DNA of 64,000 bases from Dicyema japonicum (GCA_011109175.1 RDEW01000012.1:1088129-1152128); one strand, 5' to 3'. Positions 14,521-54,720 are shown, counted from the stretch's first letter. Numbers and translations: made by a program. The notes: a model not told the origin generated them from the sequence alone.

Positions 14521-15803
14521 CATGGGGGATCACATAGCTAGATTTCAAGAAATGTTATTTTGACTGTCATTTTTACCCATCGAGCCGAAACTTGGAGATT
14601 CGAGGTCAAAAACGCCTTTATTTATACGTGCCATCGAATCGTTGATAGTGAAAAAGGTGAAAAAGGATTGCTGATTTTCCACGTTTCTATAATAAATGGT
14701 AGAGAGAATGTAGGAGAGTAACTTACTAATTTATACCACTTAATACTTTTCGACTATAAAGTATAACAATGACTTTCGAAATATTCAGTGTATATGTCAC
14801 AGGAAATTTCGCTTCTATGGCTGTCCTGACTTTGTGAAAGAGAAAACGAAATTTCCAGAATATCTGACTGCAGTCTTGATAGAGTTTTTATATATATTTG
14901 CCCATGATTACTCGTTAAAAAGTAATGTCCTTTGCTATCTGAGTTATCCAAATCGACAAATTGTGGCCGATATCGGTAAGGGACGATCATCGCATCTCAT
15001 TGGGAATAGGGTCGTTCATATTTTGGAGTTGGAACATTTCTTCCCAACAGTCTACCACAGTAGTTCCCAAAGTGTGCTGGAGGCACCCTAGGGTGCCTCA
15101 AAAATTATGATATTTAAAAAATTAATTTAAATTAAATATTTTGTTATAATATTCCACGCCTGTTTGAATTTCGCATGTAATTTTTTTCTTGTAATGGATT
15201 GTATGCCTATTAAAGTTTATAACTTATTTTTCCACTCTAGAATAGAAAATATAAGAATATCTTGCTTATGGATTTTGCTAGTTGAGGATTGATGATCTTT
15301 CAATGACATTGAAGATCAATTAGTTTCCCGCTTAAAAAATCTGATTATTTTTCTATTCAGTTTGACGAATCAACTGATCTTGAAAGGATTATCATATATT
15401 AGTTTTTTGTTCGTTATTTGCTTGATTCTACTTGTTTTTTTTACATTTTCTACAAAATTGTCAATGAAATAATGTCAAATATCCCGCAGTTAATGGGCTT
15501 AATTGGAAATATGAAAATTTCTCTTTCGATATCAATAAAACGCAGAGCTATGTTGTATGAGATTACAGTACCTCCAGATGTAATTATCACAAGATGGGGG
15601 AGTTTCTTAGAAGCGCATTTTCTCATTCCGAAAATCTCGTTGCAATAAAAGACGTTGAACAATTTTGAAGCGATGGATTATTGTTACAAATGTGACAATC
15701 ATAATCAATGAAAATTTGTTTTCATGAACTCTTTGAAATTGCGAAATAAAAATGACTAAATCTGATTTGAAAAAAAATTCTCAACGCATTCAATGAAGAA
15801 AAT

Positions 15804-16136
15804 AGCCGCGTGGCGCCATGTGGTGCTGCGTGGTTAATTGGTTGAAGTTTTCTGCTTGCTTGTCTGTTCCTCCTCTCTCTTCCTATTAGAGTGGCGTCAT
15901 GTGATCCACCTGTCTAGGTGGCGCCCAGTGTCAGGCCGGCATGAAAAAGGATCATTTGCTCTTCCCCACTCCACTGGAGGTGTTTCCACAACTGCATGTA
16001 ATGGACGTCTTACCTTTTATGCTGATTCCGGATGGACTCTGTTTCTGTAGAAGTGGAAACTGGATACACTAAATTAGTTGTTTACTTTAACTTTTTTCTC
16101 GATGTATCCGGGGTTAATAAATTAAATTAATTAATC
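15804..16136 (+). mobile_element. Short non-autonomous retroposon (SINE/RIME-like), copy 1
   Basis: TSD gaagaaaat at 15795-15803 and 16137-16145; near-identical to 50645-50970 (minus); LINE-like tail ending ggggttaataaatt. Confidence 0.9.
15893..15954 (+). ncRNA. Candidate HDV-like ribozyme fold in retroposon copy 1
   Basis: P1 GGCGTCA/TGGCGCC, P2 TGATCC/GGATCA, P3 ACC/GGT, P4 GTGTC/GGCAT, A-rich J4/2. P1.1 and L3 are non-canonical. Confidence 0.5.
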
Positions 16137-17329
16137 GAAGAAAATTTGCTGTTTTTAAAAAGATCACCTCTTTTCTGTAAAAGGAGATATTGAAAATTAT
16201 TTTATTTTAAGGAATAAGAAGAATGAATTAATGGATGTTGTTAAAATGACTGACAAATCAATAAATCCAATGACACATTGCTACCTTCTAAAATGTCCCT
16301 ATACTTCAATTGCAGTGAAACAATCTTTCTCCCGTTTGAGTCTAAAGATAGAAATTTCAATGAAAACAACTTTGAAAAATATTTCATGCTAAATTAAAAA
16401 TTCCCTGACAATACATAGTTTTTATTAATTTTCAAATAAATTGTCCTAAAATGACTTGTCCTTTGTTCTTTCTTAAGATGTCCTAATTGTACCATTTTGT
16501 TTTTAAAATGTCCTAAAAAAGTTCTATTATTTCCGACCTAATGATTACTATGCTGAAATTTTATTTGCAGATAAAAACGAAACGATTTGGACTTTGGTTG
16601 CTACATGTTTGAATACGAATCGTTCTCCTAATGTCAGGTATTTTTTTCTTTTAGAATCTCGGCCTTTGCTGAGGCTGACCCTGGTTGAGTTGCTGTTATT
16701 GTGAGGTTTGATAAAGAGAAGCCATCAAAATTAATTTATATGCGGTTTTATTGATTTTTATTATTAAACACAAATTTTTATTTATTTTTTAATAAAAACA
16801 AATTATTATTTATTTATTCAAACAAATGGTTCATATGTTGAAGTTACGAGACGATACGGTGAAATTGGACGTTGAATGGTGATTGTGGTAGCATCAGTAT
16901 CAATTTGTTGAAAATCACGAAGAATGGGGTCCTATAATTTGTATTTCCGGAAACGGAACTAAATGATTAAAAGATTTTAAAAATTGGGCTTTTTACATGA
17001 AGCAGATTAGACAAATCATCTTATGGAAAACTTATCCTTCAATGATGGAGGTAGATAGTTCATGAGGTACCCGTTCGTCCACTCAAGATGCTATTGAGCA
17101 ACGTAGATGAAGATCTATAATATAAAATAGTAAATTTCTGTGAACGTATGGGAGCTAGTCAGCAGTATTTATTTTTAGCATAAGGTAATTTGTTCTACAC
17201 GTGGTCTCAAGATGTGACGATCTTTCCGAGCATTGTTAGGACCACTAAGATAAAGAAATTAGCATAAAATATATTTTCAGCAAAAAATTGAGGTTAAGTA
17301 CCACGTGGAGTGAAATGAAAACAAAAATA

Positions 17330-20966: not shown

Positions 20967-22861
20967 AATTTTCCGCCTATTTAATGAAAATAAAGAAATT
21001 AATGAAAAATAACAAATTAATCTCTAATTAGTACTTAGGCACTCAGAATATAGTTACGCACAAGTATGCTAAAACAATATTAGGGAAGCCATGTTCACTC
21101 AGGCTCGCCTTTAGCGCTCAAACAAGGCGCAATTATTTTCATGACTATAATCAAACATAGAAATGATTTTGGTAAAATAAAGCGATAAGGCAAATTGATG
21201 GAGCGTTAAATTGACAACTCTCAATTTGAATGGATTTAGCTGCGTTGTCAAAAAACTAATTTTCATAAAATGATAATAGGACTAAAATCTTACATTTTTG
21301 ATAAGTCATTTTCTTTTGGATTCACAGAAATTTAATATAACTACAAGAGATTGTAAAATTTTAAAGTTAATTCGATTTCCTAATAGATCTTTGAACGGCT
21401 TTTTCAGAATTTGGAATAACATTTTGTGCGATATCTAGTTTCATGTGATTTTATAGGAGACTGAGAATTTATCGATCCCCGAAAGGTTTGATGAATAAAT
21501 TGTTAGTAAAATGAAGGAGACAGCTTCCTTAAATACGTTGTACATTTATTAACAAGCAGCTAAAATGCAGTTAACTCGAAAAGACCCAGTTTGAAGGAGA
21601 TTATTGATTAGATGAAGGACGGACGTGCGAACAACCCAGAAATTCCAGAAAAAGGTAATGATCTATTCTGGAGTTAAAGTCGGTCTTATTTCATTACGAT
21701 TTCAACATTATGTCACTTTTGGAGGCGATGGGAGTCTTGAATGGAACCTTTCCGGAATTCTCTTATTGTCTTTTTAAGAACTCCATGAAATTCATGGCAC
21801 GTGGTACGTCATACCTCCCAACACTAAAAAAAGAAGTCACTCATATCGACCGTTTCTTCTATAAGTTTTCTTCTGAAGACACATGGGACGCTGCAAACTA
21901 TGAGAAAGTAGAATCTCAGATCAGAACTGTATCCTAGAAATATCAGAAAAATACTCAACGACGCTCATCGGTCGACACCCAATGCCCCATAAAGATCTTA
22001 CTAAACTTTGCAGATTTAATGTCGAGGTTAGCATCATAGAACTGTATTACTATTCATGCCAATAAGTGAATATTGATATATCTATTTGAATTCAGGTTAG
22101 AGTTTTTTATAAATAGTGAATATATATCAATACTATAAACTCATCTGGTTTCTAACTAACCTGCCAATGTGGAGATATTAAAATAAATGGTTTTTCCTCA
22201 AATTAGTTTTATTGTTTCAAACAATAAGTTTTTACGTTACTCAATAATTTTCTTATTCTTCAGCTGGGCCAATTTCGAGATAACTTTTATCCATAAAAAT
22301 GGGAGACAGCGGATCAGATTAAAAAACGACCATAAATGCACACTCTGGAAAAGTCAATTCATCTAAACGGTGCAGTAACTAGGTGTTATTCAATATATAT
22401 TATTATGTACTCTCATCGTTTTCCGCAGATATTTAATATTTTGATTCTTTTGAATTTTCATTAATTTCTGAATTTTGTTTTTGAATTTGATTTAATTATA
22501 AGTAGTACTATTGTGAAATTATAGTTGATACCAATAATCTATAAGGTTAACAGAAATGAGCAAAATTTGCAGAATTTAAAGGCGTGTTTATTTGGTTTTG
22601 AATGCTGTTAACGGATAGAGTAAATTTTGATATTAATTAGGAAATTAAGTCTTTACGTTATGTACGTTTCATTTGTAAAAGTTTCATAAAAATGTTGATC
22701 AAGATTTATAAATAATATTCCAGAAACTGTACTTTGATGAGAAATGTATACGTTGCCTAATAATATTATAAACTGAGAAATTGTATTTAAGTGATTTATG
22801 TCGGCATTTGTTGACTTTTACGTTTACCAATAAAGTTAGTGAATGTTCAATTATCTATGTA

Positions 22862-24823
22862 TTTATTTAATTAATTAACCCGAAAAGGGAACACCAAGAA
22901 AGAAGGAGTAATCCAACTAATTAAGTGATCCCGGTACGCCTCAACAGGATCGAGAGGTTTTTCCTGTGTTCCTCCAGAGTACCCACGGCTTTCCTGAATA
23001 AACGACGATCATCTTTCATTAGAGTTTGAAGAGGAGTGGGGTTTTTCCCCAAATTTCGTGTATTTGAAGCCTTCAGCCTTGAATGGAAGAAACGACTTGT
23101 TTCTTGGCCACACAGACAGATGAAGCCGGAACCATTATTTTTGATTGCGGCGAGGTCAAGCATTGGAGGAAAAGATCGGGGGGTAGATTTGTTTGACGTG
23201 CTAGTTTTCCAATTAGTGTATTGATCTTGAGTGAATTTGATATCGAAGCTCCATAGGCCCATGTGGCACAGGCGTACTCAATCGTCGGTTTTAGGAGTTG
23301 ATTGAACACGACGAGGGCGCATTCCTGTGAAGGTTTGGACTTCAAGAGCGGTTTGATATATTAAGTTTCCTGAGACCCTTTGTCATAACGTTCTTCACAT
23401 GTTGAGAAAATGACATCAAAGGGTCAAATGTCACTCCCAGGATAGTTGGACGAGTCTGTAGTGGTAAGGAGTCTCCAAAATGTTCAAATCAAGTGTATGT
23501 TTTTCTTTTCTGTCCGTGGTGAAGATTGTATATGTTGATTTGTCCCTGGATACGGAGAGACGATTCAACTTCAACCAGGCTCCCAGGTCGTCAATATGTG
23601 ACTGAAGCTCTGATTTTGCTGTACCCACGTATTTGTTCCTGCTAGCGATGATTAGGTCGTCAGCATAAGTGAGAAGCATTGAATCTGGTCCTCCAGGGCA
23701 GGGTAAATCGTTGAGGAACAAGTTGAATAATGCCGGAGAGAGGGGCGATCCTTGAGGGACGCCATTTGGTAGGAGACGGGACCTCGATCTTGCGTGGCCT
23801 ATACAGACACGTCCTCTTCTTCCGGAGAGAAAATTGGCTATCCATCTTTTCAAATCCGTCTGAATGGTGGTGTCAAAAACCTTCTTCGTGAGTAATATTC
23901 TCGAGACAGAATCGAACGCCTTCTGGATATCCAGGGAAACCATTATTGTCCGTAGATGGCGTTTCGGTACGTTGAACCCTTCTGATATAAATTGAGACAG
24001 TGAAGTCAAATGTGTCGTAGTTGAACGCTCACATTTGAAACCATGTTGAAAGTGGCAGTCGGGCAAATGGGGTTTAATTTTCCAGAGTACGAGTTTCTCC
24101 ATTAGGCGCGATAATGCGCACGTTAATGAAATTGGACGGTAGGAAGAAGGTAAGGTTTTCGGTTTTCCTGGTTTAAGGATCGGTATTATAAGTGAGTTTT
24201 TCCATTTGCATGGGATGACGTTCATGTTAGAAGACAAATTAAAAATTGACGTAATTGAATTGATTGCAGCATTACCAAGGTGTTTTAACAAAATTCCCGG
24301 ATGCCGTCAGGTCCACACGTAAAAGATCTCTTCATCGATCTTATAGCCTGTGTGACCTCGGCATGCGTAAACAGATTGATCCATGAAGTTGGTTTAGGCA
24401 CTAAATTCCGAAAGTGACAAGAATGGGATTTCGAGAAGTCCTTGTGGCTTATGGATGCGTAATATTTCATTAGGTTGTTAGCTTGCACAGTATTTGGAGC
24501 AGAAAAAGATTCTGATTCATCTGATAAGTTTAGCTTGATTCGACGAATAGTTTTCCATAAAAGACTCGTGGATTTCATATGTCCAATAGATGATAATAGG
24601 CGCTTCCACGCCCTATCTTTCTTTTCTCTGATGAGCTTTGTAATTCTCTGATTTAAGCATTTTATATTTTGCAAATCAGAAGAGGTTTGCAGATGATTCA
24701 TCTTCAGGGAGTTTCTTTGTTTGATGAGGAGACGAGTCTCCGAGTCCAGAGTAGGCTTGTAGGATTTATAAACTGCACGTGGTACAAACAACTTTTCAGC
24801 TTGAAGGATTACATGGTTTACAT
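22862..24823 (-). mobile_element. Ingi/Vingi-like LINE, RT to 3' end (left arm of palindrome)
   Basis: ORFs 24285-24836, 23431-24291 (YRPISL, QHGF, SLDIQKAFDSV, GVPQGSPLSP, YADD), 23073-23345 (LKPTIEYACATW), 22921-23262 ending RTGIT*; 3' stem-loop and AT-rich tail; no RNase H seen. Confidence 0.92.
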
Positions 24824-26858: not shown

Positions 26859-28223
26859 ATCTAAACCATGTAATCCTTCTAGCTGAAAAGTTGTTTGTAC
26901 CACGTGCAGTTTACAAATCCTACAAGCCTAATCTGGACTTGGAGACTCGTCAAACAAAGAAACACCCTGAAGATGAATCATCTGCAAAACCTCTTCTGAT
27001 TTGCAAAATATAAAATCCTTAAATCAGAGAATTACAAAGCTCATCAGAGAAAAGAAAGATAGGGAACCCCCTATTATCATCTATTGGACATATGAAATCC
27101 ACGAGTCTTTTTATGGAAAACTATTCGTCGAATCAAGCTAAACTTATCAGATGAATCAGAATCTTTTTCTGCTCCAAATACTGTGCAAGCTAACAACCTA
27201 ATGAAATATTACTTATCCATAAGCCACAAGGACTTTTCGAAATCCCATTCTAGTCACCTTCGGAATTTAATGCCTGAACCAACTTCGTGGATCAATTTAT
27301 TTACACATGCCGAGGTCACACAGGCTATAAGATCGATGAAGAGATATTATACGTGTGGTCCTGACGGCATTCCGGGAATTTTGCTAAAACACCTTGGTAA
27401 TGTTGCAATCAATTCGATTACGTCAATTTTTTAATTTGTCTTCTAACATGAACGTCATCCCATGCAAATGGAAGAACTCACTTATAATACCCCTCCTAAA
27501 CCAGGAAAACCGAAAACCTTACTTTCTTCCTACCGTCCAATTTCATTAATGTGCACATTAATCGCGACTAATGGAGAAACTTGTACTCTGGAAAATTAAA
27601 CTCCATTTGCCAGACTGCCACTTTCAACATGGTTTCAAACATGAGCGTTCAACTACGACACATTTGACTTCACTGTCTCAATTTATATCAGAAGGGTTCA
27701 ACGTACCGAACCGCCATCTACTGACAATAGTGGTTTCCCTGGATATCCAGAAGGCGTTTGATTCTATCTCGAGAACATTACTCACGAATAAGGTTTTTGA
27801 CACCACCATTCAGACGGATTTGAAAAAATGGATAGCCAATTTTCTCTCCAGAAGAGAGGACGTGTCTGTATAGGCAACGCAAGATCGAGGTCCCGTTTCC
27901 TACCAAATGTCGTCCCTCAAGGATCGCCCCTCTCTCCGGCGTTATTCAACTTATTCCTGAACGATTTACTCTGCCCTGGAGGACCAGATTCAATGCTTCT
28001 TACTTATGCTGACGACCTAATCATTGCTAACAGGAACAAATACGTGGGTACAGCAAAATCAGAGCTTCAGTCACATATTGACGACCTGGGAGGCTGGTTG
28101 AAGTTGAATCGTCTCTCCATATCCAGGGATAAATCAACGTATACAATCTTTACCACGGACAGAAAAGAAAAACATACACTGGATTCGAACACTTATGGAG
28201 ACTCCTTACCACTACAGATTCGT
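26859..28223 (+). mobile_element. Inverted duplicate of the same LINE segment (right arm), truncated at 28223
   Basis: Reverse complement of 23450-24823 at roughly 94-95% identity (about 18 differences in a 330-nt block checked by eye). Confidence 0.92.
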
Positions 28224-33775: not shown

Positions 33776-36398
33776 ATAGCTAATTCTTTATTAGACAAGA
33801 GTACTGCAGGGTAAATGAAATTATTTTTTTCAGACAAGAGTACTGCAAGGTAATTTAATTGGTCTAATTTTGGAGGATTAGACTTGAAATTTACACAAAG
33901 CAGTATGAAGTATTTAGCCTGAGTATGATAGGAGAATCTTTTGCCTTTTTAGAATCAAATAGATGATATAGTTCTAAGTAATGAATGACCAACATTCGCT
34001 CTCTCGAATTGATTTTATGTGAAATATTAAAAAATCGAATAAGGTAATCAATTAATGACAAAATAAATTTTGTGCGATTTTGGTTACATATTGATCTATC
34101 AGGACTAAAAGATTTTCAACCTCGATGATTTTTTACTTGAAAGTAAAAATAGGTCATATTTCTCCTTGACCGTAAAATTAGGTCAACCGTTAAAGTAATT
34201 TTAAATATACATTTGATGACTATAGATGCTATTAGTATCCTTAATATTATTCGCAACCAAATGTGGATGCCATTGGTTTATTCTGACATTACCACTTCTC
34301 TTATTTCTTGATCTGTGGACGATTAGGAGGATATTTTCTGAATGATCTAAATGACCGAATTAATCTGAAATCACATTAAGATATGTTTTTGAAAAAGAAA
34401 GAGTTCCTTGAGAGGAATATGATGCTAGGAGGTCGGCTTCAAGACGACTAGAAATTATTCAACAAATGGTTGGTTGAATGTATATCAATGTGGTAAAATT
34501 GGCAACGTTCTGACAAAGAAGCAGTGAGAATAGCTGCCTCGCTCCGTTTTGACCTTATTTTGTGTTAATGAAAATTCATTTGTGGACGCTGAATCGATGG
34601 TTATCATCCTTTAAGCTAATTTATGGCTGTCCCTGAGGTAACAACTTGACATTAAAAATGCACTTTTTCTGCTGGCCACAACTAGTTTCTTCCTTTGCGA
34701 TGGCAACGCCCCGAAGGGATAACGATATTCCCATTCGCTAATGGTTGAAACATTGCTTGGGGCGTTACACATGTTAAAATATACTAGTATCTCGTCGATA
34801 ATCCTTCCTTGAAGCCATGTTGGAATGTAGGTTGTGGGAGAAAGGGCGAATAACTTTTAGGACCAGTTTCTCCAGGATCCTCGACAAAACACATATAAGG
34901 GAAACTGGTCTGTAAGAGCCGGGATCGTTCTTCGGTCTTCCCTGCTTAAATATTGGTCGAATTTTTGATAGTTTCCATAAAGTCGGTATGGTATTTATGT
35001 TCAGCGATGTGTTGTAGATGTTTGTTAATGCATTTATTGATGCTGGGCCCAAGTGTTTCAGCAAAATAAGAGGAATTCCGTCTGGGCCACATGAGTTTGT
35101 TTTTTTCTGATTTGATATTGCTTTGGATACATCTTTAGGGAGAAAATAAATCAGCAGGGCAAATTTGGATGGCTTTCTCTTTATTTTCGTTTGTGTGTTA
35201 ATCTTTTTATAAGGAATGTGACTGATTCGAATACAATGTTTCATATATTTATTCAGATTGAGCTGGCATTGTTCTTTGTTATCTTCGTATTCTGGGATCT
35301 TCAGAACATCTTCCACATGTTGGAAATTGAGGTCTGATTATTCATGGCAGCAGAGATTCGAATGAGTTTCTTCCTTTGGGTGTTGTTTGTGCTTTTCGTG
35401 ATAAGAATGTTTAGTGACCTGATTCGATTAATAACCTCTCGTGAACGATGTATCATTCTCTTAAGGTTGTTTCTTTCCATAATTATTTTCCTTGTTTTTG
35501 AGTCGTATTTCAATTTTTCGTTTTTTATATATGCTTTTCTGATAAAAATATTTCTCCCGTCAATGATTGTTTTGTTGAAATAGTATACAGCTTTGTCTAT
35601 GGAGGAGAAATTTTCAGGTTGGAAATGTTGCAGTTTTGAATCAACGAAATTTGTAAAGCCAGTCCAATTTGCATTTTTGTAATCATAGAAATGAATAGGC
35701 TTCGGTACAAAGCGTGGCTCGCAGTTCAGCTTCATAAACATTGAATGGTGGTCGCTCCGGAGGTCATAACGGACCGTCCAATTAATGATCGGGGAAAGAC
35801 GAGGTGAGCAGACGGATAAGTCCGGAGATGTCACCATGTCCTTCGTGTTGTATGGTGTCCTAGTGTTCTTTTTCGGGTTGTTGATGATTATTAAGTTTTG
35901 CATTTGGGATAATAGCAGGTTTCCTCTGTTATCAGTGGCTTGGTAGCGGAACCAAGAAGGGTGCTTCGCATTCAGGTCTCCACATAAAAGCAAGTTCTCC
36001 AGTTTGTCCAAGGTGGATAGGTCAAAGGAGAAATTTTTCTTGCAGGAGCCAGGAGGAGAAACATAAACATTCGCAATTTCAATTTTTTCCAATGGAAGTT
36101 ATAACAGAGATTCCAATTATCTCCGTGTTCGAGTCTTCCATTAAGCTCTTGTAAAGAGAAGGGTTCTCGAGGTATTTTATTCCTTTTCTCACAAGAGTCA
36201 GTAGACCCCCTCCTTGGAAGATGGGCGGTCGGATCTTACTGTGTTGTATCTGTTAAAGAGAGGAGTAGGAATGTTATTTGAAAGTTTCGTTTCCTGGAGA
36301 AGGCAGATGTCCACTCTGTTCCTCTCCAAGAATAAGGAAAGTTCGGCAATCTTTCCTCTGATCCCGTTTATGTTTAAGCTTTGGATTGTTAACTTCTT

Positions 36399-36437
36399 TG
36401 GGCCTGGGTTTTGTTCCACGTCTCCTGAGGTCAACAG
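36399..36437 (-). other. 2A-like StopGo (ribosome-skipping) motif LLTSGDVEQNPG/P
   Basis: Exact D(V/I)ExNPGP consensus immediately upstream of the APE domain. Confidence 0.85.
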
Positions 36438-36511
36438 TCTCAATCGATAGAATGTTCCAACAGTGAGAGAATGCCGTCCAGTGGGAAGTCCTCTGGTTGA
36501 TAGAAAGCAAA

Positions 36512-36578
36512 TGGTTCTTTTTAGATATAGTTTAGGACTATATCCGACGCCACCAGAAACGGTGAACCACATGACGCA
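36512..36578 (-). ncRNA. Candidate HDV-like ribozyme at LINE 5' end
   Basis: Order P1-5'(GCGTCA), P2-5'(TGGTTC), P3 (ACC/GGT), P1-3'(TGGCGT), GG, P4 (ATATAG/CTATAT), J4/2 CTAAAA, P2-3'(GAACCA). Confidence 0.6.
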
Positions 36579-37218
36579 CGCTCAGTAGTCTTCGCATACA
36601 TGAATTGAATGAAGTGCCGTTGAGTGGGAACTCCTCTCGATGGTTGTTGACTGATGGCACCTTTTAGATATAATTTAGAAGTATATATGGCGCCACCATA
36701 TACGTCGAACCAGACCGCACATTGAATTTATTATTAATAATAATATTAAAATTAAAAAATATTATATATTAATTTAAATATCAGATTTTTAGTTTTGAAT
36801 GATTCTTAGTAACGAATTCTTGCATAACTTTTATCAATGCTGTGCTGTGAAATACTCTGACGAACCATGGAGAAGACAATAGAAGATCGGGTCGTTCCTG
36901 GGAGATCCAGAAAATGTGACATGCAGAAAACTCTGATCACTGGGGGCGTATAAAAGTTTTTACTAATTTGGCAGGCAAAAAGAAATTGTTGACAAAGTTA
37001 AATTAAATATATACAACTCATTCGTACTACCAATACTAACATAAATATGTGGATCCTGGGTGCTCTCAAATCAGGAAACCCAGATTCTAGACAGCTTCCA
37101 TAGATCCCAGATCTGTGCAGCACAAAATGATATCCGATGAAGATCAAGAACTCAGATCTAAAACCGTAGCAACTCTCAAGAACTATCGCTGGATATCTTA
37201 AAATCAAGAGGAGCCTTT

Positions 37219-50312: not shown

Positions 50313-50644
50313 TAAATATTTTTTTTCATTTTCTTATTATTTTATTTTTTTAATTCAAAAAATTGAACTCGGAAAATCATAACTGAGGCATGTAAAAAAA
50401 AAGCTTTAAGGATGCTATAATTTATACCTATCAAGCGTAGTAAAACCTAAATTGTACAAAAATAATAAACTGTTTTCGGCATGCTAAATGGACCCAAGAT
50501 TTTATTGAAGAAATTAATGACGAGTTTTTGTCTGAAATTTATCAAGATTTCGTGTCAAGACTGCAAATAAATGATCCAATTCGAGAAGATGAGTTTCTTC
50601 TTTATGAATATACATAGAATGAAGAGATCCTGGAAAATTTGGAT

Positions 50645-50970
50645 TTAATTTATTAACCCCGGATACACCGAGAAAGAAGTTAAAGTAAACAACTAATTAA
50701 GTGTATCCAGTTTCCACTTCTACAGAGAGTCCATCCGGAATCAGCATAAAGGGTAAGACGTCCATTATATGCAGTTGTGGAAACCCCTCCAGTGGAGTGG
50801 GGGAGAGCAAATAATCCTTTTTCGAGCCGGCCTGGCACTGGGCGTCACCTAGACAGGTGGATCACATGACGCCACTATAATAGGAAGAGAAAAGAGGAAC
50901 AGACAAGCAAACAGAAAACTTCAACCAATTAACCACGCAGCACCTCATGGCGCCACGCGGCTATTTATTT
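50645..50970 (-). mobile_element. Short non-autonomous retroposon, copy 2
   Basis: 14-bp TSD tggaaaatttggat at 50631-44 and 50971-84; same 5' start (aaatagccgcgtggcgcc) as copy 1. Confidence 0.9.
50812..50873 (-). ncRNA. Candidate HDV-like ribozyme fold in retroposon copy 2
   Basis: Perfect P1 GGCGTCA/TGACGCC, P2 TGATCC/GGATTA, J4/2 CTCGAAAAA. Confidence 0.55.
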
Positions 50971-53900
50971 TGGAAAATTTGGATGAAAATGATGAAGACA
51001 AAGAATGCATTAATGATGGAGAACAAAAGAATGAACAAGTCGTTTCAGACTATGATGCAATGAATGCAGTCTATACATTGAGGAAGTACTTATAACAGAA
51101 GGATGAAGTTAACTTAAATGTCTTCAATCTCCTTGATGATGTTAGTAGAAACATCAGAACGAACATTAAAACTAGAATAACTTATTATTTTAAAGGAAAT
51201 TAATGTTTTCATCTTTTAACTAGTCTTTAAAATTAAAAAATGCATTTTATCAATTTATAAAAAAATTCAACTTTGCCTCTCGAATCCGTCCTAATTTCCC
51301 AGGTCCCAAATTTGGTCGATTGAAAGGTTTTACTGTATTTTGTAGTCGTTCAGTGAGAGAGGTTGGGTCTGTTCACTTCTCCCCGACCAAATGACCACAT
51401 GAAATCCCTGAGTTATCCTATTTAAGAAGTTCAACCGAGAGTGAACTTATTTGAAAAGATAAAAACTTTAAGTGAATTAGAGTTAAGCATAGTGAACCAT
51501 AGCTACGTCACCAGCTCGACCCTCTGCCCAATTAACTACTAAGTAGTCTGCGCTACAAATAAATAAAAGTCGATTAAGACTTTCAGAACTGTGAGGATTT
51601 GGTTCATTGTACAACAAAATCCTCACAGTTCATATTAATGCCAGGGTCACTGAGAGATACAAAATGTGCTCAATTAGTGGCTAATTTCAGTTCCCGCCAT
51701 TAGCAGAGCACCTTACGTTCATGGTCTTCCATTGCATCAACCGATTCCCGGAAGCACCTTCTTCTGTGCTTACACAGGAAATCTATTGGAGAAGAGAACT
51801 TAGGAGCAGACTTTCTTTCCTTTAACTGAGGTAGAGACAGGAAAGAGGGTTTCTGTCTTTTTCACCAAAGTGGAGGAATTTGTCTTCCCATCTACGAATC
51901 GGTTAGTTAGTTTTAAAAATAGTCATAATCGATTAAATTTAAAATTTTTGAAAAATTTTGTTGTGATTTTTCCCGCCTTGCCTCCACTTGTCAGAAGAAG
52001 TCAATCTATAAGATTTTTTTGTTTAATGTATTCTGTCAAAATCAATACCGGATCCCACTTATCAAGAATATCTCCATACGTCCATAATTCCCCCAGTTTC
52101 TTTTAGTTTTATGAGTTTTCTATAAATTTGCGGTACAAAATATATAGAAAAGTCTCTTGATTATTCAAAATCTTTATAAAGCTAATTAAGTTTATTACAT
52201 TATTTAAAATACTGTATAACTTATTAAACACCTCAGAGTACATGAATTTGTCAGTTATCTTCATAAAGGTCCACATTTTCGACCAAAGCTCTAGAAGTAA
52301 CCGATTGTAACCAGACTGTACCTTTAGTATTACTTACAATTATAATGAATTCTAGTTATATTATATCTCACTTTTGAAAAAGTTTTTTGACCACGTGCTT
52401 TTTAGTTTTTTGTGTGACACTTTTATTTCAATTCAAAGTGCTTAGGAGACTTGAAATAAGTAGTTTATTATTGCATTTGTAAGCAGAAAAGTGTTTAAAT
52501 AAAAAGTTTAAAAAATTAAGTTTTGATTTTTTACCCACGTGGGCTGTCTCCCATTGTCTTCCATCTAAGGGATCTCTGGGTTCTTGTATTAATGCCTAGA
52601 AATGATTAAAGTTGAAAGTTTTTGAAATTAGCATTAATGGTCACGCCACTTGACAGGAGTAATATTAATCGAAATTTCCCGAAACTCAAAGTCTTCATTT
52701 GTGATCCCTGGGGGACCTAAGTCAAGACAAGTTTGCCAATTTTAAAGAAACAACAAATATGCAAGTGCGGACCCGAAAAAAGTTAGGTCAAGTGGGGACA
52801 AATCCCGGAGAATCTGTATCTATTCGAGGACCAGAAAAAGTGCTTGTTTTAAGCCCAAAATAACACTTAATAATTTGGTTTTAGAAATTAAAAAGCTATT
52901 TTTTAAATTGATTTAATAAGCTTATTTGTTAATTTGGTTTAATTATTTCAATAGAAAATGAGCCCCGATTTATTTGGAGTACCCACATGTCTTGACCACC
53001 TGGGTCTGACCACGTGGGTAATTTTTTGAGTGTCTAAATTTTTAAGTTTCCTAGCTTAGACGCGTGCCTAGAATATATTAATTAAATAGAAAGTTATAAT
53101 TAAGCCTTAAAACAGATTTTTAAGTTCAACTTTGATATTTAAAACTTTTCTTGACCACGTGAACAGTTTTTTTCTTAGTGGTAAACACGTGTTTAAAATA
53201 AAAAATAAATAAGTAATTAAATACTATAATTAAATAGTAAAATTAAAGCTTTTATTTGGCTTTTTAACTGAATTTCTAATGAATTTCTAATTCTAGTTAT
53301 CATGGGCTTTACACGATTGAATGCATCAACCGTTCATTGAAAAATCCAGAATATTGATAGTCCTGTGTGTCTTTGATTAAATCCTATTATGTACTTTTAA
53401 CACGTTGGCTATTTCGACTTCACCCTCATCCAATATTCTATTCCAGTTGAGATTCTTAATGGTCGTATTTTGCCTTAATCCCTTTGTAGTGAATGTGACA
53501 TTTCGTTATCGTTTCCGACTGAATGGACAAAATGATAGACTCAGTAGACAGCGGATATACGAAGTTTCAAAGGATACACTGTGCTCTGGATTCGAATCTC
53601 GTCTGTCACAAAATTTGAAGAAAGAGCCTTGTGGAGGAATAAGTGATTTTGAGTATTAACACCCAAAACGTTATATTTCAATCATTTAATACCATAATAT
53701 AAGTATTATCCCACATAAGCTGTTTCGGAGGGATCAGTTGTGTCCAAATTCCTTTTATTTTCGAATCCTAACGATAGAACATCCGATTCTTATTAAATTC
53801 AAAACTTCAGATTTCCGCTGTTTCATGACTTGATAATTTTTTGCATGCAACGAAATGAAGGAAGACTGCTTCTATCATAAAACGATGCAGACATATCGCA

Positions 53901-54420
53901 CATTCCTCTTTCATGGAAGTTACGTCATTAGGTACGAATTATTAATTGTAACTTTAAATCGTCAATTTAAGGCAATATGATCTCTTTTAAATATCCTGGC
54001 GAAAGCACACTATTATAGCAGGAACAAATAACCAATAGTTCTTCTGTTCATCCTTAAAGCAGACCTGCTCAAGGTAATCTAATCTTGTCCAGATGGGATT
54101 CAAATCCAGTCATTAGTGGATTCCATGGATTCTTATTTCAAAAACATCTGGTTTCAGATGTCTCCTGATTCCTTAAGATGTTAGACCAGAGGTTTAAAAA
54201 ACCACAGACAAACAATATTTTTACTCTTACCAGGGAACTATAATAACTTCACTTAGTGAAGGCTATTCATTCAGTTACCCCCGATAATTTCGAGTGAAAA
54301 AAACAAAAAATTACAGCCAAAAGCAAACGCTCCAGAGATCCGATAGTTAAAACTATAGGAAGCTCATTTATTTAAAAACAAAAAATTTTATTTATTCAAA
54401 ACAATTTATTTATTTATTTT

Positions 54421-54720
54421 AATAACCCTGGGAACAGCGAGAAAGAAAGACAAGAGTCAAACAGTTAGGTTGGAAAATTATTATTATTATTTAAGCCAAA
54501 GAAACACCGTCTTAACCAATAACTAATATTCAGGTGATCCCGGCATCTCTCAATAATCGGGCCATTTTTTCTCGATGCTCCGACCGTGATCCCACGCATT
54601 TTCTATACGGACGGGGTCTTTTTCCTTTCTCTTCTGAAATTGCCTCCAGTTGCCTCTATGATAGACTCGAGTGCTCTGGGGGCAATTTCTTTCTGGAGAA
54701 TGTTCAACTATATAAATTTT
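54421..54720 (-). mobile_element. Two stacked Ingi/Vingi-like LINE 3' tails
   Basis: SEHREKMARLLRDAGIT* with stem GGGATCACC/GGTGTTTCT and (taa)n tail, followed by a second tail cctaactgtttgac...cagggttattaaaat similar to 56620. Confidence 0.7.

Follow-up and report, generated by a model that had tools for sequence, protein, structure and literature searches.

The stretch of Dicyema japonicum DNA analysed here, 64,000 nucleotides long and referred to below as the window, carries two full-length copies of a short retroposon which we name SINE1. Copy A occupies 15804-16136 on the plus strand (333 nt) and copy B 50645-50962 on the minus strand (318 nt), and the two are 93.5% identical over 324 nt. 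Copy A is framed by a 9-bp target-site duplication, GAAGAAAAT, found upstream at 15795-15803 and as an identical 9-mer downstream at 16137-16145. The duplication around copy B, ATCCAAATTTTCCA, is 14 bp long (upstream 50971-50984, downstream 50631-50644; minus strand), and 8 extra nucleotides, AAATAAAT (50963-50970), lie between its upstream half and the start of the element. A preliminary description of this DNA had reported two copies of about 330 bp with duplications of 9 and 14 bp, and both were found; it had extended the second copy to 50970, which is right as to locus and strand, but the element, read on the minus strand, starts at 50962 and the 8 nt upstream of it are a junction extra. 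Neither window copy has terminal inverted repeats, and both terminate in GGGGTTAAT followed by an A/T microsatellite. In the surroundings of copy B, a plus-strand open acidic frame, EEILENLDENDEDKECINDGEQKNEQVVSDYDAMNAVYTL, runs through 50963-51080, and the copy may have been inserted into or beside an exon.

Read from its 5' end on the plus strand, copy A begins with a head hairpin (15804-15835), recognised from the minimum-free-energy folds of two copies and from a step in conservation at nt 1, and continues with a pyrimidine-rich head spacer (15836-15881) that contains a TTTT run at about nt 46-49. Then follows an internal copy of the 11-nt leader with which the related LINEs begin (CCUAUUAGAGU, 15882-15892; AAUUUUAGCGU in LINE C and AAUUUUCUCGU in LINE A), and after it a hepatitis delta virus (HDV)-like fold (15893-15956; covariance-model match of 95 bits), whose counterpart in copy B is at 50804-50876. 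The rest of the LINE 5' module, from the leader-ORF region to a remnant of the 2A codons, takes up 15957-16056 and was placed by a shuffle-tested alignment to LINE C nt 109-176; the remnant reads GTAGAAGTGGAA, and its LINE counterpart GGAGACGTGGAA encodes GDVE. The 3' part consists of a stem-loop common to LINE tails, GGAUACAC ... GUGUAUCC (16062-16109), and of the terminal GGGGTTAAT with its A/T microsatellite tail (16110-16136). Copy A deviates from the family in this part: its 3' stem strand is AUGUAUCC, and the conserved start of the loop, UUAAUUAG, is UAAAUUAG. SINE1 is without coding capacity, as the AUG within the fold stands directly before a UGA and the sole other frame, in the head, has 23 codons.

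The LINEs related to SINE1 are of a compact type, 2.9-3.0 kb with a single ORF for a 2A peptide, an APE endonuclease and a reverse transcriptase (RT), and two families of them, A and C, are represented in the window, both on the minus strand. The family C copy (34794-36582, element nt 7-1800) has the HDV-like fold at 36504-36581, the 2A codons at 36399-36437, the APE and the start of the RT; it is without the last ~1.07 kb, which in this family ends in a (TAA)n tail. The family A copy (22860-24823, element nt 1009-2971; 99% identity to the full-length copy L070) is without the first 1,008 nt and contains the RT (RVT_1, E 5e-33), the C-terminal region, the 3' stem-loop and the tail; a mirrored arm of family A lies at 26859-28223. 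The window thus holds no complete LINE, as the preliminary description had supposed it to do. Two smaller fragments may be mentioned here. Directly upstream of the LINE C 5' end, 98 nt at 36615-36712 (minus strand) are 74% identical to LINE C nt 20-117; P1, P2 and P3 are missing from this stretch, which probably derives from the 5' end of another LINE family. The other fragment, at 54404-54470 (minus strand), is a tail of the stem-loop/GGGTTATTAAA type that has lost its 5' part and measures ~60 nt; immediately before it stands a LINE C 3' fragment (54477-54692), which ends in (TAA)n.

Complete LINEs were found elsewhere in the genome. The sequence of family A is based on one full-length copy, L070:2721-5690, which is 2.97 kb long, is bounded by TCTATCTAATGCA, starts with (G)GAATTTTCTCGTGGCGTCATGTGGTTCACC and ends with GGGGTTATTAAATAAATAAATAA; the same 5' end occurs at 13 genomic sites. 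LINE C elements are 2.87 kb long, with the start AATTTTAGCGTGCGTCATGTGGTTCACC and the (TAA)n end in 28 of 30 fetched copies. Before P1, the 13 LINE A and 28 LINE C copies have in common a leader of AATTTT and 5 further nucleotides. A G stands directly before the first templated base (GAATTTT) in 7 of the 13 LINE A copies, above the expectation from base composition, as would be expected of a copied cap. Both families have one frame-shifted ORF of ~960 aa with an APE (Exo_endo_phos_2) and RVT_1. It starts at the AUG of GGCGUC-AUG-UGG, inside the fold, and the 2A motif, GDIEQNPGP or GDVEQNPGP, follows after 58-59 codons, just before the APE.

The Ingi/Vingi-like type to which the preliminary description had assigned the LINE is a putative label. 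When the pieces of L070, a decayed copy, and the window ORFs were searched with Pfam, the domains returned were Exo_endo_phos, Exo_endo_phos_2 and RVT_1, with no RNase H in either, which argues against Ingi proper. A 2A peptide is also present in the CR1, L2, Rex1 and Crack clades, and 2A LINEs of the CR1, L2 and Rex1 types may be considered as well as Vingi, which the size of ~2.97 kb with one ORF of ~960 aa would fit. Searches of the ESM Atlas and a word-based protein search yielded no clade-specific neighbour, returning generic RVT_1 clusters and ‘jockey’-labelled spider proteins of at most 50% identity. In its compact, ~3-kb single-ORF form the helper is comparable to Vingi-2_Gav, which has 3,128 bp and 993 aa (PMC5786205, PMC3708506).

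SINE1 across the genome

The assembly searched comprises 67,542,437 bp in 377 pieces; the published description gives 67.5 Mb, 377 scaffolds, 36.7% GC and 49% repeats (PMC6736024). When SINE1 was compared with the assembly by BLAST, 1,972 first-look candidates came up; 40 of these were scored, and all 40 were full length at 94-97% identity. The copy number would be about 1,200-2,000. Counts of 28-mers, allowing up to 3 mismatches and with reversed-pattern controls of zero, were 610 for the head (nt 3-30), 883 for the core (nt 90-117) and 1,166 for the tail-proximal part (nt 252-279). Such a fall from 3' to 5' is the pattern to which LINE-driven copying gives rise.

Despite this loss toward the 5' end, SINE1 has a defined beginning. 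Among 30 fetched copies, conservation rises from background to >90% exactly at (A)GCCGCG. In a census of 40 copies selected solely by the tail 28-mer, 22 start at nt 1-5, 8 at nt 12-31 and 7 are scattered deeper truncations, the remainder being alignment breaks (2) and a copy adjoining an assembly gap (1). The claim that the element is a defined unit and not a product of random truncation is thus borne out, the 5' ends being mostly uniform, where generally scattered ones would have spoken against it. The Logan contigs of four public runs, all from one 2019 study and none recorded as RNA, have a depth excess of ~1,000-fold over SINE1, with mixed flanks piling up at 15800-15809. One truncated copy (L074, G000:C1:917750-918240) starts at nt ~82 (ATTAGAGTGGCG), which is the position of the LINE 5' end.

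Clear target duplications of 8-14 bp were seen in ~19 of 32 full copies, and the 5' junctions often have 2-20 extra A/T-rich nucleotides. The extras in L020, L017, L024 and L077 are T-rich and often resemble the antisense of the tail repeat, and that of L020 includes a partial second copy of head nt 17-30; these four suggest template jumps at the end of reverse transcription. Taken together, the target duplications, the junction extras, the variable tails and the minority of 5' truncations show that the family is mobilised by target-primed reverse transcription.

The family has been active recently. Divergence from the majority sequence ranges from 0.6 to 19%, with a mean of 4.4%, and since it can be as low as 0.6%, some copies are very young. 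In 65 copies, G/C sites are altered twice as often as A/T sites, and the change from the majority at CpG (5.5%) is close to that at other G/C sites (5.8%); nothing in these copies points to CpG decay through methylation in this genome.

The LINE-derived body and the HDV-like fold

Behind its head, SINE1 follows a LINE at both ends. SINE1 nt 79-253 is colinear with LINE nt 1-176, a stretch that begins with the 11-nt leader, continues through the HDV-like fold and then follows the leader ORF as far as the codons of 2A. Within it, SINE1 nt 88-170 against LINE A nt 8-90 in L070 is 77% identical over 83 nt (E 1e-11), which agrees with the LINE 5' signature previously noticed in the middle of the element, and the SINE1-LINE alignment runs on through CATTTGCTCTTCCCCA. 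The alignment of SINE1 nt 199-253 to LINE C nt 109-176, up to the GDVE codons, was equalled by 2 of 1,000 shuffles. From nt ~254 to 333, SINE1 follows the last ~80-100 nt of LINE A, with the 3' stem-loop and then a (TAAA)n tail, and the tail of copy A matches the window's LINE 3' end at 22861-22931 as had been proposed (73% over 75 nt, E 4e-4). The 3' module is common to at least three LINE families. Its stem is GGAUACAC/GUGUAUCC in SINE1, GGGAUCAC/GUGUUCCC in LINE A and GAGAUCAC/GUGAUUUC in a third family; the loop opens with UUAAUUAG and includes the LINE stop codon, and GGGGUUAAU and the microsatellite come after it.

This colinearity with LINE nt 1-176 and with the last ~80 nt shows that the body of SINE1 is an internal-deletion derivative of a LINE that has kept these two parts. 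The preliminary description had reached the same derivation by pairing ends which, as it turned out, belong to two families (the 5' end to C, the 3' end to A); the pairing does not stand, but the conclusion does, because full-length family A copies outside the window carry both ends. Family A, through L070, is the one LINE family in which both SINE1-like ends were found together, and no LINE copy in the window has both. It is best seen as a relative of the parent LINE, and not necessarily as the parent or the current helper, because the best LINE match to SINE1 is 72-77% identical.

The HDV-like fold is shared by SINE1, LINE A, LINE C and a second short family, SINE2, which is described below. 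In each of the four, a stretch of 62-68 nt can form P1 to P4, arranged along the sequence as in HDV-like ribozymes. In copy A, P1 pairs 15893-15899 with 15919-15925, P2 15900-15907 with 15949-15956, and P3 15908-15910 with 15917-15919; the P4 hairpin lies at 15928-15942 and J4/2 at 15943-15948. P1 (GGCGUCA/UGACGCC and variants) has 6-7 bp and P3 (ACC/GGU) 2-3 bp. P2 occurs in three compensated versions, UGUGAUCC/GGAUCAUU, UUGGAUCC/GGAUCCAA and UGUGGUUC/GAACCAUU, and over the four lineages it has 7-8 pairs in register versus 0-6 with the partner strand slid. These pairs were counted by script with the slid strands as controls; the MAFFT and covariance-model alignments misregister P2' of SINE2 by one column. 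The P4 hairpin differs in sequence in each lineage, and P2 and P4 covary. A covariance model built from these sequences matches, in 185 kb, only these families.

The nucleotide at -1 is always U, and LINE A and LINE C have a G1-U pair. Both LINE families and SINE2 have a C before the A-rich J4/2, and so does the majority sequence of SINE1 (CGAAAAA); this candidate catalytic C of the majority (CACGAAAAA) is a U in window copy A (CAUGAAAAA). The candidate P1.1 pairing, UG/CA, falls at different loop positions by lineage and has no consistent placement, and the HDV-type models of Rfam gave no match to SINE1 or to the LINE 5' end at E values up to 10.

It is worth pointing out that the genomic copies do not begin where such a ribozyme would cut. 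None of the 40 tail-selected SINE1 copies starts at nt 90, the predicted cut site, which is G1 of the fold, and neither does any of 41 LINE copies. Upstream of G1, every integrated LINE copy has kept its 11-nt leader and SINE1 has 89 nt, as against the ~85 nt previously estimated. Since leader and head were copied along with the rest, the RNA that was reverse-transcribed would have been uncut at that site, in line with the earlier proposal that self-cleavage does not set the 5' end. On these structural models we regard the fold as real and as not defining the 5' ends, with catalysis as a prediction.

The head module and the 5' end

The head of SINE1, nt 1-78, is without a counterpart before the leader in the sampled LINEs. 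A 14-bp hairpin, AGCCGCGUGGCGCC-AUGU-GGUGCUGCGUGGUU, takes up nt 1-32 and dominates the predicted structure of the whole SINE1 RNA (z of -4.5 and -3.5). The hairpin resembles the LINE 5' terminus itself: head nt 5-31 and LINE A nt 7-37 are identical at 24 of 26 aligned bases with a 4-nt gap, a likeness which is short, at 26 aligned nt, and which was equalled by 14 of 5,000 shuffles (p about 0.003). Against LINE C, the likeness was equalled by 53 of 5,000. The repeat of the P1-like motif that had been noticed in the head is confirmed, and the substitutions after CAUGUGGU are those that enable the nt 1-32 hairpin. About a third of copies have UGGCGCC as their P1' strand, and the GGCGCCA of the head is the complement of this. 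The head spacer was also considered as a second LINE 3' loop, which would make the element a kind of dimer; this was rejected, the likeness to the LINE A loop being equalled by 27 of 2,000 shuffles (p about 0.014) and the spacer having no likeness to SINE1's own tail or to LINE C.

The same head is found in SINE2, a short family with at least 446 core matches (copies at L061:5204-5423, L019:1219-1414 and L024:2781-3040), which has the same fold with a different P2 and tail. Its P2 is the compensated version UUGGAUCC/GGAUCCAA, its J4/2 is CAAGA and its tail ends in ...TCTTTGGAATAATTTTAATTT. A SINE1-type head (TGTGGTGCTACGTGGATAGTTTGTCAAAATTATTTTCC...) precedes the SINE2 core in 22 exact-anchor matches; a head 28-mer taken from one SINE2 copy matched only itself. 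Because the same head stands before the SINE2 core, it is a module common to both families, and a chance event in a single master copy does not account for it.

The simplest account of the head would be that a LINE family outside those sampled owns the hairpin and spacer as its 5' UTR, so that SINE1 nt 1-253 would be one contiguous LINE 5' end and the element a plain bipartite derivative. The genome has many LINE families and 5' ends were sampled from two, the head starts with LINE 5'-terminal sequence, and it is common to SINE1 and SINE2, all of which this account would accommodate. However, a plain derivative begins with the LINE 5' terminus and nothing added, and SINE1 has 78 nt before the LINE-type leader. 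Both sampled families start at this 11-nt leader, which lies intact inside SINE1 at nt 79-89, and the head matches (610) are fewer than those of the core (883) and tail (1,166), with no visible excess of head-bearing LINEs. We consider this account unlikely.

A head of this kind could, on the other hand, be the badly decayed remains of a tRNA-derived promoter placed before LINE 5' and 3' parts, as in SINE2-1_ACar, so that SINE1 would be a classical Pol III SINE. The order of head, LINE 5' part and LINE 3' part is that described in PMC5786205, an internal promoter would suit the uniform 5' end, and the first 20 nt of the head bear a loose likeness to the acceptor and D arm of a tRNA whose A box is imperfect: TGGCGCCATGTGG departs from the A box (TRGCNNAGTGG) by a single mismatch and one additional base. 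Yet SINE1 has no B box, as had been stated before, and ARAGORN, and Rfam at E values up to 10, detected no tRNA, 5S, 7SL or other known RNA in the element or in its head; at gathering thresholds, Rfam returned nothing meaningful for the whole window. The TTTT runs at about nt 46-49 and nt 222-225 belong to the family majority, and such T4 runs would terminate Pol III in most animals. The 3-kb LINEs, moreover, have the same motif at their 5' end, and these are impossible as Pol III units. When set against the strict definition of a SINE, SINE1 has the LINE-derived tail, the target duplications, the high copy number and a length within 100-600 bp; it has neither a small-RNA head with A and B boxes nor freedom from internal Pol III terminators. 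A Pol III origin of the head is in our judgement very improbable.

By contrast, a tRNA-type SINE head elsewhere in this genome is readily spotted by eye. In L051:1148-1515, and also in L056, ~335 nt flanked by a 13-bp duplication, GGTGGCGTCGGAT, interrupt the 5' end of a LINE C; on the opposite strand this insert opens with a head like a tRNA, in which both the A and the B box are perfect (TGGCTTAGTGG ... GGTTCGAATCT), and finishes in (TTA)n. This composite, present on two contigs, looks like the insertion of a canonical tRNA-type SINE.

The uniform 5' end could also come from processing of the RNA, for example by an RNase P-like or RNase III-like cut at the base of the hairpin that trims read-through transcripts. 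An element that brings no promoter along needs some means of this kind, and the very stable 14-bp hairpin begins exactly at nt 1. The hairpin loop has 4 nt, though, and no tRNA-like features, and the LINEs, which are without the hairpin, have an equally uniform 5' end; processing is therefore thought to be quite unlikely as the source of the 5' end.

Our preferred reading is that SINE1 is a non-coding, non-autonomous retroposon which is very probably copied in trans by the RT of a compact LINE. The LINE protein would recognise the shared 3' stem-loop and tail in trans, in the manner of the ‘stringent’ type. The head would have arisen by duplication and remodelling of the LINE 5' terminus, and the uniform 5' end would reflect a transcription start fixed by sequence internal to the element. 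Most likely this sequence is an internal promoter of the Pol II type that came with the 5' end of the LINE, and neither ribozyme cleavage nor a Pol III A/B-box promoter would set the 5' end. The HDV-like fold would be retained as an RNA structure, the template RNA remaining uncut at the predicted site in the LINEs and in SINE1 alike, and the head hairpin may lend stability to the 5' end or be a competitor of P1.

We would also like to put forward a wider proposal, tentative and to be taken with some doubt, in which SINE1 and SINE2 make up a class of retroposons whose promoter-bearing head is a duplicated and remodelled LINE 5' terminus in hairpin form, with no captured Pol III gene. The HDV-type pseudoknot behind the head would be a structural module, either non-cutting or attenuated by the head; in the parent LINE, the pseudoknot would hold the start codon and the 2A peptide would shed the peptide encoded there.

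Relatives and significance

Of all LINEs, only RTE, Ingi, Vingi and R2 are known to yield bipartite non-autonomous derivatives made of a 5' and a 3' part (PMC5786205). The closest parallels are in trypanosomes, where NARTc with L1Tc, and RIME with ingi, are like SINE1 in being ORF-less partners built from the 5' and 3' ends of their LINEs. L1Tc and NARTc share a 5' module with an HDV-like fold (Pr77/L1TcRz; PMC3185411, PMC3383444), as do SINE1 and its LINEs, and the ORF of L1Tc opens with a 2A peptide (PMC3708506), as it does in the Dicyema LINEs. There are, however, clear differences. The L1Tc fold starts at +1, so that cleavage coincides with the transcription start, whereas here an 11-nt leader in the LINEs, or 89 nt in SINE1, precedes the predicted cut. 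The tail of L1Tc and NARTc is poly(A), while that of SINE1 is a stem-loop with (TAAA)n. And, unlike the trypanosome systems, this one has a metazoan host and no RNase H was found in it.

In Drosophila, the R2 SIDEs have a 5' HDV-like ribozyme joined to a LINE 3' end; they spread through target-primed reverse transcription, and their 5' junctions vary (PMC3414825). SINE1 is similar in having an HDV-like fold joined to a LINE 3' end and in these two further respects. R2 itself is site-specific in 28S rDNA, has a restriction-like endonuclease and uses its ribozyme to make the 5' end. SINE1, compared with the R2 SIDEs, is dispersed, depends on an APE-type LINE, is far more abundant and has its 5' end away from the fold. 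Elements derived from Vingi and RTE (the Vingi-1_EE derivatives, SINE2-1_ACar, Bov-A and WALLSI3) have the same layout of head, LINE 5' part and LINE 3' part; SINEs built on such derivatives have tRNA- or 5S-derived heads, whereas the head of SINE1 is without a small-RNA match and is like a remodelled LINE 5' end.

The fold can be compared more widely with the HDV-like ribozymes of R2, RTE, Baggins and L1Tc. It has the P1-P2-P3-P1'-P4-P2' order in common with them, as well as a 7-bp P1 opening with G, the U at -1, a variable P4 and an A-rich J4/2 that in most lineages follows a C. It differs in matching no Rfam model, in its inconsistent placement of P1.1 and in genomic 5' ends that are off the cut site, and its cleavage is, in contrast to theirs, a prediction only.

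Judged by its sequence, SINE1 is thus an element of a known kind, RIME/NARTc/SIDE-like, with an unusual head. The family itself appears to be undescribed. No earlier description of SINE1 was found in the literature searched, Repbase being outside the scope of that search; the Dicyema genome paper, which reports 49% repeats, does not describe these families (PMC6736024), and the other dicyemid papers found do not, by their titles and abstracts, concern them.

With these elements, a first anatomy of a LINE and its short partner is at hand for the Dicyemida, and a lineage is added to the very short list of LINE clades that spawn 5'+3' deletion derivatives (PMC5786205). The L1Tc-style package of an HDV-like fold, a 2A peptide and a short partner is thereby seen in a metazoan. 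For the annotation of this small genome it is relevant that ~0.5-1% of it is SINE1, with copies near genes and perhaps inside them. The leader and head retained in front of the fold, finally, offer a natural test of whether such folds still cut, or instead serve translation or transcription.
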